Assembly: GCA_904063045.1 (NCBI GenBank)
Contig: CAJFCJ010000020.1
Coordinates: 1,046,916 to 1,110,915 of the forward strand
Source of the DNA: Dimorphilus gyrociliatus
Taxonomy: Eukaryota; Animalia; Annelida
Length of the DNA: 64,000 nt
Direction of reading: 5' to 3'
The notes beneath the pieces were generated by a model that made no database searches, was not told where the DNA came from, and saw only the letters and a list, made by a program, of their open reading frames with translations. This document shows, one piece after another, positions 51,802-62,665 of the stretch. Within the stretch, counting starts at the first letter, position 1. Each line of letters opens with the position of its first letter. The position numbers and the translations under genes were made by a program.

Positions 51802-54144
51802 TTAGTCGACTTCTTCCATCTTAGATGCATCATCGTCCTCGTCTTCGAGTTTTGGCATCTCTTCCGGAGCTGCTGCATCAGCTACTACTTCATCTTCTTC
51901 ATCAATACCTAAACCAAGTTTCACCATGCGGTGGATTCTGTTCGAATGAGTCTGAGGATCTTCCAAAGAGAATCCAGACGATAGCAGAGAAGTTTCAAAC
52001 AAAAGCAACACAAGATCCTTAACTGACTTGTCATTCTTGTCAGCTTCTACTCTGGCTTTTAGAGTTTTCATGATACTATGTTCTGGATTGATTTCCAAAT
52101 GTTTCTTTGCTGCCATATATCCCATAGTACTGGTATCGCGTAGAGCTTGAGCCTTCATGATACGCTCCATATTAGCGGACCAACCGTATTGTGATGTAAC
52201 GATACAGCATGGAGATGACACAAGTCTGTTGGATACAACGACTTTTTCGACTTTTTTGTCTAAAGCATCTTTCATTACTTTGCACAGTTCTTCGAATTGA
52301 GCTTTTTGCTCTTCAAATTTCTTTTTTTCATCCTCATCTTCTGGAAGCTCTAAGCCTTCTTTAGTAACGCATACCAATTTCTTTCCATCATATTCCTTCA
52401 GTTGTTGAGTGGCATATTCATCGATAGGATCAATCATGTAGAGAACCTCAAAACCTCGTTTCTTTACTCTCTCAACAAAAGCTGAATTTTCGACAGAGTC
52501 TCTAGATTCTCCAGTTATGTAATAGATATCTTTTTGATTTTCTTTCATTCTAGAGACATATTCCTTTAGAGATGACATTTCGTCACCAGATGACGATGTA
52601 TGATAACGTAGGAATTCAGCTAATTTTTTTCTATTGGTACTATCTTCATGGATGCCCAATTTCAAATTCTTGGCAAATTGCTCGTAGAATTTTTTATAAT
52701 TATCTTTGTCTTCTGCGATATCATCGAACAATTCGAGACATTTTTTGACTAAATTCTTTCTGATGACTTTAAGGATTTTGGATTGTTGGAGCATTTCTCT
52801 GGAGATATTAAGTGGTAAATCTTCAGAGTCCACTACTCCCTTAACAAAGCCCAAAAACTCGGGGATCAACTCCTCACAGTTGTCCATTATGAAAACTCTT
52901 CTAACATACAATTTAATATTGTTGCGTTTCTTCTTGCTTTCGAACATGTCAAAAGGAGCACGTTTAGGAACAAAGAGCAAAGCTCTAAATTCCAGTTGCC
53001 CTTCGACAGAAAAATGTTTAACAGCAAGATGATCTTCCCAATCATTGGACAGTGATTTATAGAATTCACCGTATTCAGCTTGAGAAATATCGTCTGGGTT
53101 ACGGGTCCATAATGGTTTAGTTTTGTTGAGCTCCTCGTCTTCAGTGTACTTTTCCTTGATCTTTTTCTTCTTCTTGCCCTTATCTTTTTCTTCCTCATCA
53201 TCTTCCACGTCCTCGATTTTCGGCTTTTCTTCTTCGTTATTATCTTCTTTCTTTTCGTCTTCTTCCTCATCGTCACTAATCTCCTTCTCTCTTTCTTTTT
53301 CCACCAAAAGACGGATTGGATAACCGATAAATTGTGAGTGTTTCTTCACAACGTCTTTGATTCTTTTTTCATCTAAGTATTCAGTTTGATCTTCCTTAAT
53401 GTGCAAAATGATTTTTGTTCCTCTTCCAGGCATTTCAGAATTGTCTGATCGTACAGTGAAAGATCCTCCGGCTGAAGATTCCCACAAGTATTGTTCATCA
53501 TCATTGTTCTTGGTAATAACTTCAACCTATAAAGGAAAATACTTAAGAAACGGCCTCATTGAAAGGTAAACTACTTACTCTGTCGGCTATAAGGTAAGCG
53601 GAGTAAAAGCCTACACCAAATTGACCAATCATGGAGATGTCAGCTCCAGCCTGAAACAATAATATTCGTTAACAAAGAAGATTTATAACTTGAAACCTAT
53701 TTGATATATGATAAATTTTCAGGTTTAATCAGCGTTCTGCATTATATTAAGACGGGGAAAGAATTTTCATCATTGTTCAAACTGTGTAAAAAATGTAGAA
53801 ACAATACATACCTGAAGGGCTTCCATGAATGCTTTGGTTCCTGACTTTGCAATGGTACCCAAATTGTTGACCAAATCTGCTTTAGTCATACCAATACCAG
53901 TGTCCATAATTGTCAAAGTGTTGTTGGCTTTGTCGGGTGTAATTTTGATGTACAAGTCTTTTCCGCTGTCCAGCCTTGAAGGATCAGTAAGACTTTCATA
54001 TCTTATCTTGTCCAAAGCATCGGACGAATTGGAAATTAATTCTCTCAAAAAAATTTCCTTGTTGGAATAGAAAGTGTTGATAATTAAGCTCATTAATTGA
54101 GCAATTTCGGCTTGAAAAGCGAAGGTTTCGGCTTCTTCTTCCAT
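51802..54144 (-). CDS. HSP90: Cytosolic heat shock protein 90 (Hsp83), 3 coding exons
   Basis: [57 protein letters not shown]-terminal MEEVD. Confidence 0.99.
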
Positions 54145-54413
54145 TTTTGCTGTTAAAGTAAAAAGAAACTTTAGAATATTCAAGCACGTGGAACTTAAAA
54201 AGTCGAATAAAAATTTCATTCGTTTAGTAACTTTATACGAATTGAATTTGTTAGGTTATTACCTTGAGTTAATTTTATTATTTGACGTTTAAATGTCAAA
54301 AAAGGCTCTCTTTCAACAAGTGACGGAGTTGTATCTTGAACAACACGAGATTCGAGAATGCACGCTCTCGGAAAATGCCGGCTATTTCTCATGATATTAA
54401 TACGCTGAGAGAA

Positions 54414-58500: not shown

Positions 58501-59830
58501 TTCTATTTATCCAATATCTCAAGTTTTCACAAATTTGACAAATGCTTTTGATAAAAAAGAAATAGATAAGGAATTGATAGAATTGGCTAAATTTTCAAAG
58601 CAACATGTTCCAGAAGAACATGAAAAAGATGGTGCTAAATTTGTCTCAAATAGAATAAAGAAACTAGTTGAATTTGGAATAACAAATGCTCTAGTTTCTC
58701 TAAGTTCCACCGAAAGTCAAGCGACAAGAGAAGCAATAGCGCGAGTGTTCTTAGCGTGCACGGAGGATATCAAACATAGAGGATTAATAGTTCAACATGG
58801 CGGAGCAAAGGTCAATCCGATTTTCTTTTTCGTAACCATTGAAATTCTTAATATTTAAAAAAAGCAGGCTTTACTTAATCTCCACAAAGATAATACGAAG
58901 CAAGGGAAAGTGAAAGCCGCTCATTCCCTAGCAAAAATTGCTATAACTACTAACCCGGAAATTGCTTTTCCTGGTCAGAGAATGGTTGAAGTAGTTCGAC
59001 CATTAATATCTCTTCTCGGAATAGATAATACAGCATTAGAAAATTTTGAGGCCTTAATGGCACTAACTAATCTAGCGAGCATGAACGATGACAGTATTGT
59101 GTAAGTGACTGTATGACAGATTATTGAAACAGTTTATTTAAATTCATTTTTTTTGTATAGGAAGCGAATTGTATCTGAAAAAGGATTAACATATATTGAA
59201 CATTATGTCTACGAAGAACACGATATGTTAAGAAGAGCTGCCGTAGAATGCTTTTGCAATTTAGTTCAGTATGAAGACGTATGTATTCAACTGTAAATAA
59301 ATAAATAAGTTTATTTATTTAGACATTTTAATAGGTTGCGAAGATTTTTCTAGGAGAAAATGATAGAGTAAAGTTATTCCTTCTCTACTGTACCGAGGAG
59401 GATGAAGCGTTGGTTAGAGCAGCATCTGGTGCTCTAGCAGTGTTAACTTCTGAAGAGGAAATATGTAGGAGAGTTGTCTCGGTAAATATCAATATGTCTA
59501 TTTTTCACTTGGAAAATTTGCTTTTGTTAATTATATCTTGCTTTTCTATTGTAGTGTACAGAGCAGTGGATCGAAATTCTTGGGCTTCTTGCATCTCATC
59601 CTAAACCTGATATTCAACATAGAGGTCTATTTATTATTCAAAATCTAACGTCGTCTTCCAAAGAAACTTGCTCACGTGTAATTGAAAGCGTTTTATTCGA
59701 AGCCTTACAAGCAGTCTCTAGGATAGAGGAACCAGATAGAAAGAATTCAAAATTATGTGCAATGGAAGGATTAAAAAACGCCAGAAAATATGGATTAATT
59801 CAAGCTAATCCAGACTTGGACGAAGATTAA
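55559..59830 (+). CDS. UNC45: UNC-45 myosin chaperone (TPR + ARM/UCS), multi-exon
   Basis: QLKEEGNDLFKK..YKEAVKLY, NRAACYLKL, KALFRRCQSY, VRALVGLCKL, RRWAAEGLAFLS, KAAHSLAKIAITTNPEIAFPGQR, ENFEALMALTNLAS. Confidence 0.95.
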
Positions 59831-60031
59831 CTTTCTAATTGTCAACATTGTGTGCGATTTTATTTTTTAAAGTTTATAATAGCATTTTTATAATTGAAAA
59901 GTTTAACAGAATTTGACAAAAACTACATATAAGGTGTGCAAGGTGAGCCTCAAAGGATATGCATATTTATAGATAACTATTGTCTGAAAACATCTATCTA
60001 AAAATTGTCGGTTTTCCACTTGAAAATATCA

Positions 60032-60907
60032 TTAATCCAAGTACCAAATGCAATCATCTTGCTTGTCTGCAACACCTGTTAACTTTCCATTTCTGATGGC
60101 TAGATATTTCTTTCCGTAATTAGCAAATATTATTACGGCTCTTTCTCCGTTTGTACTAGTTTCATCAGCGATTAATTGCCATTCCTCTGCTCCGTAATGT
60201 TGTCCTTTCGTGTAAATGTAATTACCATTAGGATCATAGCCCAAATATCCATTACTACTGTAATTTTTATAGAAGTAAATAGGAGAGTTCTTCTCTTTTC
60301 TTTCTTCTATCCAAAAGCTCGTTGCCTCAGGACTATTACGCAAGGTCAGAGTGCTTCTGCTGCCCGAAGCTGCATGAACTTTTACTTCTCCACTTTCGGC
60401 CAAATACTTTCCTTGTAATTTATGCTTGAAAGCTCTTCCGGGTTTTACGGCTGGTGGAGCGCTTACAGCTTTTTGGGGTCTAGTCATTTTGGTAACATTT
60501 TCGCCTACTCTATGTACAATCTCTTTGGCAAGCGATTGTATTCTCTTCTCCATATTATTATTCTCTCTAAAATCTATCCATAGCAGGCCGGCAGTTATAA
60601 TGCCTAACCATCCAGTGGCTTTAAAACTTTTCTCAGCCATGACAGGAACAATTTCAATATCTTGTGAATCAGTATAATTTAGCTCTTTTTTACAGTTTTT
60701 TGATTCCGAGTACTGATGGGTCATGAAGCAGCAAACAGCTGCAGCATTATCCACACCATATGCCATACTTTCGTTTATGTTTCCCGTCATTCCACCTTTT
60801 ATATCCATCCATACTGATATACCTAATTTCTCTAATCCATTATAAATTATTTCAACCATAGGTTGAATTCCGTGCTGATAAGATAACATAACATGCTTAG
60901 ACTCCAT
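60032..60907 (-). CDS. Intronless TIR (TIR_2-type) domain protein with C-terminal beta-trefoil-like domain
   Basis: HVMLSYQH..VWMDIKGGM..MAYGVDNAAAVCCFMTHQYSESKNCKKEL..IVPV..GWLGII.AGLLWIDF. The C-terminus has three repeats of KYL/GYL...W typical of fascin/ricin-B-like trefoils. Confidence 0.8.
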   Translation of the reverse strand: MESKHVMLSYQHGIQPMVEIIYNGLEKLGISVWMDIKGGMTGNINESMAYGVDNAAAVCCFMTHQYSESKNCKKELNYTDSQDIEIVPVMAEKSFKATGWLGIITAGLLWIDFRENNNMEKRIQSLAKEIVHRVGENVTKMTRPQKAVSAPPAVKPGRAFKHKLQGKYLAESGEVKVHAASGSRSTLTLRNSPEATSFWIEERKEKNSPIYFYKNYSSNGYLGYDPNGNYIYTKGQHYGAEEWQLIADETSTNGERAVIIFANYGKKYLAIRNGKLTGVADKQDDCIWYLD

Positions 60908-61672
60908 TTCCAATTTTTGTTTGTTTTGTGATCAAGGAGACGCTATTGATTGAATATTTCCTGTTCGTATCGAAGGTGAAGGATCCCTCTTAAGTTGATG
61001 GCTCACTACCGGTATAAGAAATTTATAATCTTCTAAGACATGCTAGTTTGAAGGCAATATTATCAGAATATTTCAGCCATGCTTGACCAACGGAAGACAA
61101 AAAAATAGGTTATTTTCCAGGAAAATAATGCTATATATATTCTTATACAAAATAGCAAAACAAATAATAAAAGAGTTATATTTTGAAATATGCCATAACT
61201 TAAATATACGCTTCATACTGGGTATACTGAAAACAAAGTATACAGTGCATATATATATATACTGTTTATATACTGTATACTTGAAAATACGTCATAAACA
61301 AACTCATACAGAATATACATGAACTGTATTGTGTATTCTCAATACAATGTAAAGTATATACTGTTTAATTAGGTTTTTATATTTGTTTACGTTCTTACTA
61401 TCATAATTATCTAGTTTTACATGTAGCAAAGAACATGGCAACGTCAAAAAATTTGCAAATAAACCAGTAATTTTTTATAATTGAGAAATAGCCGACACCA
61501 ACTCCATCAAATTTGTATAAAACATAAATTCAAAATTTTCATTATCAGATTTAGTAGTATAGTTTTTGTTGTGTACTACATTCAATTATGAAACAGAAAG
61601 GTAATTGTCTTAAATCAGAATGAAAACATTGGGTGGCAGTTAACTGCATAGACAATACTGATAATCCATTTA

Positions 61673-62665
61673 TCATCGAAATTCGTAAATTGGAATGGAT
61701 CTTTCATCAACATAGTCTAATCGGAGTTCTTGAAACCTATAAAAATATTAAATTTTATTTTATAATATAATAATAATAATAAGGAAAAAAATCCTTACTG
61801 CTCTGAATTTGTATGAAAATAATAGCCTTCTATGTCTCCACTAGATTTTTCAAAGCATATATAATAAAATCCAGCAAACGATGCACCATTTATCTCGGTT
61901 ATTTTGTGATCAGGCACCAAAAAATGTTCTTTCCATCTCATAAAAATGTAATCACTTGATTTTAGGGCTTCGTAATCGAATTCATCCGAATTAAATGTCG
62001 TGCGGTAGGGTTGAAATGATTCAAATTTACTCTATAAGAAAGTAAAGCACTTGTATATAGAAGAACACAATAAGTCTTAGAATCAGTATTTATAAAGATT
62101 TTAATAATGATAGGGGAAAAACGTAATTCTCTAGAATTCATTATACGTTATTTATAACTAGTATCAAAGAACGTTTAAAAGCTCCGAAACGTGTAACATA
62201 AATCTATTATCGAACACACCCATATTAGGCATAAATACTCACCCAATGCTTTTTATCGGTATCCTCTTTCGCGTGCCAACGCCGAGTTAAAAAAGGAAAT
62301 TTCTCACTAATAATCTCACCATCAAAAAAAGTAGTTAAATTTGGAAATTCATCTGTTAAGCCTTTGATTTTCAAATAGCCACATACGTAATTTTGCTCTA
62401 AATCTACATACTGCAATTATATAAATAGGATTAAAATAACAATTTACAATTGTACGACAGTGATCTAGATATAGTTGAATTAATGGATACAAGAGTTGAA
62501 TACGAAAGAAGATCAAACCTGGATTGTAACTTCAACTTCGTACGTCGATCCTTTAGACGTCTGTGCACCGGAAAATTTTGCACCCGAATATAATCTCGTC
62601 GTTTGAACCCCCGGTTGCTTAGAGTTTGCCGGTAGTGGGGGAGTAATATTTAACAAACCAGGCAT
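61673..62665 (-). CDS. GID4: GID/CTLH complex substrate receptor GID4, 4 exons
   Basis: [25 protein letters not shown]|YVD...[26 protein letters not shown]...[33 protein letters not shown]. Confidence 0.93.

Follow-up and report, generated by a model that had tools for sequence, protein, structure and literature searches.

A single-exon gene of the annelid Dimorphilus gyrociliatus belongs to an ancient animal family in which a TIR domain is joined to a predicted beta-trefoil

The window analysed here is a stretch of 64,000 nucleotides of the annelid Dimorphilus gyrociliatus (GenBank assembly GCA_904063045.1, contig CAJFCJ010000020.1, positions 1,046,916 to 1,110,915 of the forward strand), and positions are counted from its first letter. 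On its minus strand lies a complete coding sequence of 291 codons in one exon (60035..60907), which was read from the list of open reading frames (ORFs) and the sequence; it starts with the ATG at 60905-60907, has its final codon at 60035-60037 and is closed by the stop TAA at 60032-60034. The translation is a 100% match to the stored protein of 291 amino acids. This protein consists of an N-terminal TIR domain (residues 2-138; 60494..60904), a linker (residues 139-154; 60446..60493) and a C-terminal domain that is predicted to be a beta-trefoil (residues 155-291; 60035..60445), all encoded on the minus strand. A preliminary description of the DNA had read an intronless fusion of TIR and beta-trefoil at 60032-60907, and the Pfam, AlphaFold2, Foldseek and VIA results given below confirm it. 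The gene adds a new member to an animal TIR-beta-trefoil family that is catalogued but unnamed. Overall, it is fairly probable that it represents the worm orthologue of an ancient animal gene for a soluble, nicotinamide adenine dinucleotide (NAD+)-processing TIR protein with a regulatory trefoil, whose introns were secondarily lost.

The N-terminus of the protein appears to be complete. Two codons before the ATG stands a TTG (60913), and 8 codons farther upstream there is an in-frame stop (10 codons in total); therefore, an extension at this end is impossible without splicing. Since all aligned orthologues begin at the same initiator methionine, no upstream coding exon is expected, and the preliminary description's own caution, that upstream exons might add a conventional receptor architecture, was not borne out. 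In a Kyte-Doolittle scan with 19-residue windows the highest mean was 1.17, and neither a membrane helix nor a signal peptide was found in the protein. The protein is soluble and cytosolic, as had been proposed.

The gene is transcribed and is under purifying selection. The RNA evidence consists of assembled contigs, from which transcript ends, strand and expression level are not readable, and these come from a coral metatranscriptome (X1), a marine metatranscriptome (X2) and a run from the source organism (X3). The type of the last run is unrecorded, and it was judged to be RNA-derived because its contigs have GT..AG joints in both neighbour genes, which are UNC-45-like and GID4-like; the joints in these genes span 56-211 nt. 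In the same run the ORF is covered by two contigs without a splice joint, and the 25-nt gap between them (60455-60479) is spanned by contigs of X1 and X2. The single exon among spliced neighbours, noticed earlier in the DNA, is thus seen in RNA contigs as well. Downstream of the ORF, a 3' untranslated region (UTR) with an AATAAA at 59859-59864 on the gene strand was placed at 59853..60031 (minus strand) from an X2 contig (59853-60590) and X3 contig 8 (59554-60454). The 5' flank (60908..61672, minus strand) is crossed by X3 contig 9, which is continuous from 61734 down to 60480 and has spliced GID4-like exons upstream. The flank should comprise the promoter and 5' UTR of the TIR gene and probably the 3' UTR of the GID4-like gene, the final exon of which terminates with IPIYEFR and a stop at about 61673. 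The G+C content is 0.36-0.39 in the region of the TIR-trefoil gene versus 0.26-0.32 in the flanks.

Contigs of the coral metatranscriptome are at least 99% identical to the gene over 60250-60786, and others of the same run match the GID4-like gene (61519-62561) at the same level; therefore, the coral sample contained this worm or a strain very close to it. The marine metatranscriptome contains a relative about 94% identical to the gene. In its coding sequence 11 of the 15 listed differences are synonymous and the other 4 are conservative replacements (I>V, N>D, L>I, N>T), and in its 3' UTR about 24 differences and a 9-nt gap occur within 182 nt.

The TIR domain is of the TIR_2 type. The Pfam model TIR_2 (PF13676) matches residues 6-124 with an E of 1.3e-18 and 68.1 bits against a cut-off of 28, over model positions 1-119 of 122, and the classical TIR model (PF01582) gave no match in the protein even at E 1. 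When a profile of the family TIR was compared with all solved chains, it reached only CRISPR-associated Cat1 (1.6e-5), SARM1 (7e-4), C. elegans TIR-1 (5e-3) and one bacterial SEFIR domain; no TIR of a TLR, MyD88 or IL-1R was matched among the solved structures at E <= 0.01. PADLOC matched the domain to ThsB (E 1.6e-5). A single-sequence search of solved structures gave ArtA at an E of about 0.9, which is chance level and was disregarded.

The glutamate in NCKKEL, which the preliminary description had singled out as catalytic, is Glu75 (codon GAG, 60683..60685, minus strand; SKNCKKEL) on helix alphaC. It is invariant across 30 orthologues and stands opposite SARM1 E642 (KEI) and the glutamate of the Cat1 DEL motif in profile alignments. 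Judged by these alignments, Glu75 would occupy the catalytic site of SARM1 E642 and ThsB E85, and it is referred to here as the putative catalytic residue. A BB-loop-like stretch, D35-G42 (MDIKGGMTG; 60782..60805, minus strand), includes two further invariant residues, D35 and G42, which stand opposite SARM1 D594 and G601 in the profile alignment; the latter two presumably have a functional role in the SARM1 BB loop.

Two members of the family have been assayed in a preprint, where they were recognised by searching Table S4 for the family signature. The TIR of Latimeria chalumnae H2ZXV5 (296 amino acids, TIR 3-140, catalytic residue E74) was active and depleted NAD+ while yielding no cyclic product, and it is singled out in the text because cellular NAD+ was depleted without isomers of cyclic ADP-ribose (cADPR); Clupea harengus A0A6P8EVF3 (catalytic residue E74) was active with cADPR at 4 h (bioRxiv 10.64898/2026.04.20.719644, Table S4). 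Both contain the signature MLSYQW...CKKELNY, and its third stretch, ITAGLLW, is exact in Latimeria only and reads LTAGQLW in Clupea. The Latimeria TIR is about 55-60% identical to the worm TIR, as estimated by eye and not computed. NAD+ depletion and cADPR synthesis have thus been demonstrated for only two vertebrate members, in a preprint. The idea of an NADase, put forward in the preliminary description, is therefore supported at the level of the family and for isolated TIR domains, and by extension the worm protein would have a similar activity.

Several points qualify the reading of the worm protein as an enzyme. The catalytic glutamate on its own is no proof of activity, and the preprint measured isolated TIR domains expressed in E. 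coli and no full-length member (bioRxiv 10.64898/2026.04.20.719644). SARM1, plant TIRs and Cat1 have a tryptophan at the fourth position ahead of the glutamate, where the worm has Asn71. A two-copy (homodimer) complex prediction returned a score of 0.00, which is no answer and no evidence either way. Since both active fish TIRs likewise lack the tryptophan and have Asn or Ser at this position, the Asn of the worm is probably harmless.

The fold of the TIR leads to a different proposal. In the VIA comparison the domain matched Hydra TRR-2 (Z 17.4), SARM1 (Z 16.4, root-mean-square deviation (rmsd) 2.0 A, 125 residues), MyD88 (15.7) and MAL (15.6). Because the Z scores to scaffold TIRs are as high as that to SARM1, the fold comparison alone does not separate an enzyme from an adaptor. 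The protein could then be a non-catalytic adaptor, whose TIR would act solely as a scaffold between proteins of a TLR/IL-1R-like or another TIR pathway while the trefoil recruits a partner. Adaptor or regulator roles have been proposed for conserved invertebrate TIR proteins (PMC6321704), and the same glutamate also occurs in some TLR TIRs (bioRxiv 10.64898/2026.04.20.719644). However, two family members are enzymatically active when expressed, the family profile reaches catalytic TIRs and the bacterial SEFIR domain among solved structures, and Glu75 has remained invariant for more than 600 million years by our own estimate of the age; an adaptor without catalysis is accordingly improbable.

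The C-terminal 137 residues give no Pfam family above the cut-off, and the evidence for their fold comes from structure prediction. With the orthologue alignment, AlphaFold2 modelled the domain alone with 12 strands at a mean predicted local distance difference test (pLDDT) score of 91, and the full protein at 88.9 with a predicted template modelling (pTM) score of 0.86. The centre of the linker is predicted to be disordered, with pLDDT below 50 at residues 141-148 of the full-length model, and the linker varies in length and sequence among orthologues. Foldseek, which the preliminary description had named as a check, matched the domain to solved trefoils at an E of 2e-6 with template modelling (TM) scores of 0.7-0.8. 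In the VIA comparison the best match was the FGF-1-derived Symfoil (Z 18.7, rmsd 1.5 A, 117-119 of about 123 residues), followed by the first trefoil of fascin-1 (Z 17.8), ThreeFoil (Z 17.7), Botulinum HA33 (Z about 17), FGF1/2 (Z 17) and SeviL (Z 16.8), and MIR domains likewise match structurally. A conserved tryptophan closes each of the three subdomains (W199, W243 and W288, in SFW, EEW and CIW), and these xxW endings are taken here to be a reduced form of the QxW motif. In the predicted models, therefore, the C-terminal domain is a beta-trefoil.

The assignment to a trefoil subfamily is a different matter. The Z scores lie within 2 units of one another, and because of this tie the domain is unassignable among FGF-type, fascin, lectin and lipoprotein trefoils. 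Weak sequence signals point to FGF in 8 of 28 members and to RicinB_lectin_2 in 5 of 28. A profile match to the mussel lectin SeviL has an E of 0.007, and the neighbours of the domain in the ESM Atlas are mostly ricin-type (RicinB_lectin_2). As an R-type lectin (Ricin_B_lectin PF00652 or RicinB_lectin_2 PF14200) it falls short, since the best RicinB_lectin_2 match, with an E of 0.037, is below the cut-off and occurs in those five members. In the orthologue alignment an aspartate stands at the canonical sugar-binding place of R-type lectins in the middle subdomain only (D225). As a fascin it also falls short, with no Pfam match to PF06268 and a single trefoil instead of four in tandem. The words trefoil, ricin, lectin and fascin are absent from the text of the preprint (bioRxiv 10.64898/2026.04.20.719644). 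Between the worm and cnidarians the trefoil is more conserved than the TIR, with 70-74% versus 52-67% identity.

A word-index search found 99 relatives. Full-length orthologues that are 60-68% identical to the worm protein occur in the annelid Owenia, the nemertean Tubulanus, the flatworm Macrostomum, the acoel Convolutriloba and cnidarians; the last include Nematostella, Exaiptasia, Porites and Rhopilema, with Clytia at 54%. The match to Owenia has an E of 1e-126 at 99% coverage. Teleost orthologues are 37-47% identical, and coverage is 98-100% among orthologues overall. Many unnamed metatranscriptome contigs also match the family. All these orthologues are named 'uncharacterized' or 'TIR domain-containing protein', and the trefoil is unannotated in the databases. 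A search from a fish member returned teleosts alone among vertebrates and no named tetrapod, shark, arthropod, nematode or mollusc, which indicates, without proving it, that the family was repeatedly lost among animals. The family gene is of ancient origin and almost always present in one copy.

In a maximum-likelihood tree the worm protein pairs with that of Owenia (support 91/88), the fishes are monophyletic with a species-like order, and the anthozoans cluster. This topology agrees with vertical descent, and nothing in it points to a horizontal transfer. A horizontal origin, which the preliminary description had allowed for, is rejected on the strength of this tree together with the range of orthologues from Cnidaria to teleosts and their shared animal introns; the other origin that it allowed for, retroposition, is taken up below. 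A full-length homologue (P0031), 57% identical, is present in the EukProt entry 'Opistho-2', presumably the unicellular filasterean Pigoraptor chileana. The family may therefore predate animals if this sequence is genuine; otherwise it is a contaminant of that transcriptome. Many teleost entries (P0084-P0088, P0108, P0109, P0112 and P0114) are 228-239 amino acids long, about 77% of a full-length fish orthologue, and the tested herring protein (236 amino acids) is similar; they may be without the last trefoil exon, either by annotation or by real truncation.

Judged by sequence searches, the trefoil subtype is almost exclusively fused to TIR_2. When the trefoil was scored alone in the word search, only TIR-bearing family members were found. 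An exhaustive HMMER search with a profile of the trefoil retrieved 79 sequences at E <= 0.001 from 1.84 billion representative proteins; almost all of these are short gene fragments from the family. Of the longer hits that were scanned, two match the full domain and have a recognisable partner domain, which is TIR_2 in both (P0150 and P0168); none of the scanned hits was a bacterial protein with this trefoil subtype. Three long hits with multiple matching stretches (P0157, P0167 and P0194) have unrelated or low-complexity Pfam matches and were treated as spurious. A weak hit (P0202, 570 amino acids, E 4e-5) has a RicinB_lectin_2-like region and an Ifi-6-16 domain. An Atlas search for the two-domain shape returned only a chordate cluster of the same family and TIR-only overlaps.

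The closest TIR relatives outside the family appear, from their domain matches, to be fused to other modules of carbohydrate-binding type. In a metagenome contig of the ENA (L028:3001-4503), which is eukaryotic since a dynein heavy-chain fragment adjoins, a single ORF of 500 amino acids (P0089) has the same TIR subtype, with 59% identity over 128 residues, and a different, longer C-terminus in which RicinB_lectin_2 is above the Pfam cut-off. A related TIR (P0096) has a weak F5/8 type C match below the cut-off. Within the D. gyrociliatus genome the nearest TIR paralogues (L002, L003 and L004, on contigs C12, C31 and C9) are 30-37% identical and are long single open frames, in which ARM-like repeats precede the TIR and the motif S-x-x-C-R-x-E is kept; a SAM-like tail follows in L002 and L003.

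The orthologues of Owenia, Nematostella and Tubulanus have six coding exons each. The five introns common to them lie after or within residues 46, 67, 113, 172 and 222, in phases 2, 0, 2, 1 and 1; Megalops has at least the last two. This mapping relied on the orthologue proteins in their database form, and at each junction it read the split codon only. The window gene has none of the five. Since the introns stand at identical positions and phases in the orthologues, the comparison indicates that the ancestral gene had five introns and that the intronless state is secondary. The gene is orthologous despite this state, which is derived and no ground for exclusion from the family. In the 78-Mb genome, where introns are about 60 nt long, the paralogue search proposed earlier found one copy of the trefoil, and neither a second copy nor a relic nor an intron-bearing parent was found even at E 10.

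Since all five introns are missing, a cDNA intermediate would be the simplest mechanism, and the loss probably proceeded either by retroposition with loss of the parent or by gene conversion with a cDNA. The retroposition suspected in the preliminary description thus fits in so far as it concerns this type of intron loss. The evidence on the other side includes the lack of retroposition scars and of a poly(A) tract at the locus. The sole direct repeat that flanks the gene (59885-59900 and 61472-61487, with 15 of 16 nt matching) was weighed as a target-site duplication and is at chance level, since it would be expected about 0.3 times by an estimate for 2.4 kb at 70% A+T; the RNA contigs run across both of its copies. 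Microsynteny with Owenia is not kept, and the gene Mog1, which adjoins the Owenia gene, lies in the worm on contig C24 and not on C20. This fits a relocation and proves nothing, so that it is uninformative on whether the introns were lost in place or with a relocation.

In another possible scheme, the five introns disappeared singly, each in place, while the genome became compact, and no cDNA was involved. The genome paper reports general intron loss in D. gyrociliatus, with fewer introns than in other annelids and intron loss named as a correlate of compaction (PMC7854359); since the species has such a general loss, five separate losses are possible, and the lack of a poly(A) tail and of a convincing target-site duplication fits this scheme as well. 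However, both flanking genes, UNC-45-like on the plus strand and GID4/VID24-like upstream on the minus strand, retain several short introns. The loss in the TIR-trefoil gene includes the 5'-proximal introns, no second copy or relic is left in the genome, and the gene neighbourhood is unlike that of Owenia. Piecemeal loss is thus the less favoured scheme, with perhaps a modest chance of being right, and the passage through a cDNA is preferred.

A possible mechanism of the protein can be described as follows. The TIR would cleave or cyclise NAD+ using Glu75, and it would have to associate with itself to build the active site, as in other catalytic TIRs. In catalytic TIRs such as SARM1 and the bacterial filaments the active site lies between two subunits, and because it forms there, assembly is a likely control point. 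The trefoil may be a module that binds a ligand or a partner and most likely governs where or when the TIR assembles, either by ligand binding or by tethering. The short disordered linker would tie it to the TIR, and a fixed orientation of the two domains is predicted from the full-length model. A glycan, actin, an inositol phosphate or a nucleotide is a possible ligand; the first two had been named in the preliminary description, which suggested a sensing immune effector. The extreme conservation of the trefoil argues for a conserved ligand over varied microbial surfaces, and its identity between worm and cnidarians, together with the single copy and the 1:1 orthology, looks more like a housekeeping or regulatory ligand than like pathogen-driven recognition.

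These last features also suit a housekeeping enzyme of second-messenger or NAD metabolism, which would produce cADPR or ADP-ribose constitutively or under metabolic control without sensing pathogens, and whose trefoil would anchor it to the cytoskeleton, to membrane phosphoinositides or to an endogenous glycan. One copy in the genome and 1:1 orthology across phyla are as expected for such an enzyme. A trefoil conserved above the TIR is unusual for pathogen-recognition lectins, and there are structural ties to the actin-binding trefoil of fascin and to MIR and IP3-receptor trefoils. Most animal TIRs in the preprint made cADPR without NAD+ depletion (bioRxiv 10.64898/2026.04.20.719644). However, NAD+ depletion, as seen with the coelacanth member, is what a death or abortive effector does. 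The family has apparently also been repeatedly lost, with no tetrapod, arthropod, nematode or mollusc among the named hits, which is unexpected for a core enzyme, and close TIR relatives are fused to lectin-type modules. A purely housekeeping role therefore appears rather unlikely, though less so than the adaptor, and an NAD+-processing TIR under the control of its trefoil is still the preferred reading. More speculatively, and with some doubt, the trefoil could be an autoinhibitory sensor whose ligand is a conserved, endogenous glycan or small molecule. In that case the family would represent a second ligand-gated switch, independent of SARM1, for NAD+ destruction or cADPR production. Such a switch would go back to the cnidarian-bilaterian ancestor, or to unicellular holozoans should the 'Opistho-2' sequence be genuine; many marine invertebrates and fishes would have retained it, and tetrapods, arthropods and nematodes would have lost it.

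Comparison with known systems places the protein among them as follows. Other members of the family, such as those of Owenia fusiformis (P0002), Nematostella vectensis (P0010) and Megalops (P0049), have about 290-300 amino acids and the same SYQW, NCKKEL and ITAGLLW stretches and C-terminal domain; the worm copy differs in being without the five conserved introns and in having a neighbourhood unlike that of Owenia. SARM1 and TIR-1 resemble it as conserved, cytosolic, single-copy enzymes with a TIR_2-type TIR and a non-TIR regulatory domain, and the alignments match the catalytic Glu as well as the Asp and Gly of the BB loop. The worm protein, however, has no ARM or SAM domain, its putative regulatory module is the C-terminal trefoil, its TIR is 17% identical, and Asn stands in place of Trp. 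Thoeris ThsB, matched by PADLOC, and CRISPR-associated Cat1, the best profile match, share the layout of a TIR with a variable sensing domain, whereas the worm gene is an animal gene with orthologues that carry animal introns, and it has no operon partner. R-type lectins such as SeviL, fascin, FGF/IL-1 and MIR domains share the trefoil of 12 strands with a Trp per subdomain, at Z 17-19 to the worm domain; the latter is below every Pfam cut-off, has QxW reduced to xxW and is cytosolic, in contrast to the secreted lectins and FGFs. The plant protein PP2-A5 is likewise soluble and has a TIR at its N-terminus and a lectin-type domain at its C-terminus (PMC12355970), but the PP2 domain is a beta-sandwich and not a trefoil, and the lineage is unrelated.

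The neighbouring genes and their contigs deserve a brief description. On the minus strand, the exons of the GID4/VID24-like gene lie at 62698-62519, 62410-62243, 62031-61797 and, for the last, about 61736-61673, and an X3 contig (60480-62698, minus strand) joins these spliced exons unbroken to the 5' half of the TIR ORF. The join may reflect read-through, overlapping UTRs or a merge in the assembly; operons and trans-splicing are excluded for the species in the genome paper (PMC7854359). On the other side, an X3 contig (58866-60454) contains spliced UNC-45-like exons on the plus strand (introns 59101-59160, 59279-59334 and 59481-59553) and then extends over the minus-strand TIR ORF in its 3' half. 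The UNC-45-like gene and the TIR gene are thus convergent, and their 3' ends overlap or abut. Within the 5' flank of the TIR gene, a short AT-rich repeat at 61078-61345 (TATATACTGT units), with raised contig depth and several loose ends in X3, is probably a dispersed small repeat. Farther away, 53770-54219 on the minus strand is the first coding exon of a cytosolic HSP90.

The 2026 survey of TIR enzymes treated members of this family as a TIR with nothing else recognisable (bioRxiv 10.64898/2026.04.20.719644), although a strongly conserved trefoil appears to be attached throughout the family and almost nowhere else. On the predicted structures, what seemed to be a 'TIR-only' enzyme may become a candidate sensor-effector pair with a defined ligand-binding domain. 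The family entries were already known, as was the TIR activity of two members from the preprint; the family-specific trefoil and the complete loss of introns are new. The genome of D. gyrociliatus is otherwise described as conservative, and within it the gene provides a clean case in which five introns at least as old as the cnidarian-bilaterian ancestor have all disappeared. Judged by the named hits, the usual model animals lack the family, which is present in the tractable Nematostella, Clytia and Macrostomum and in several farmed fishes.

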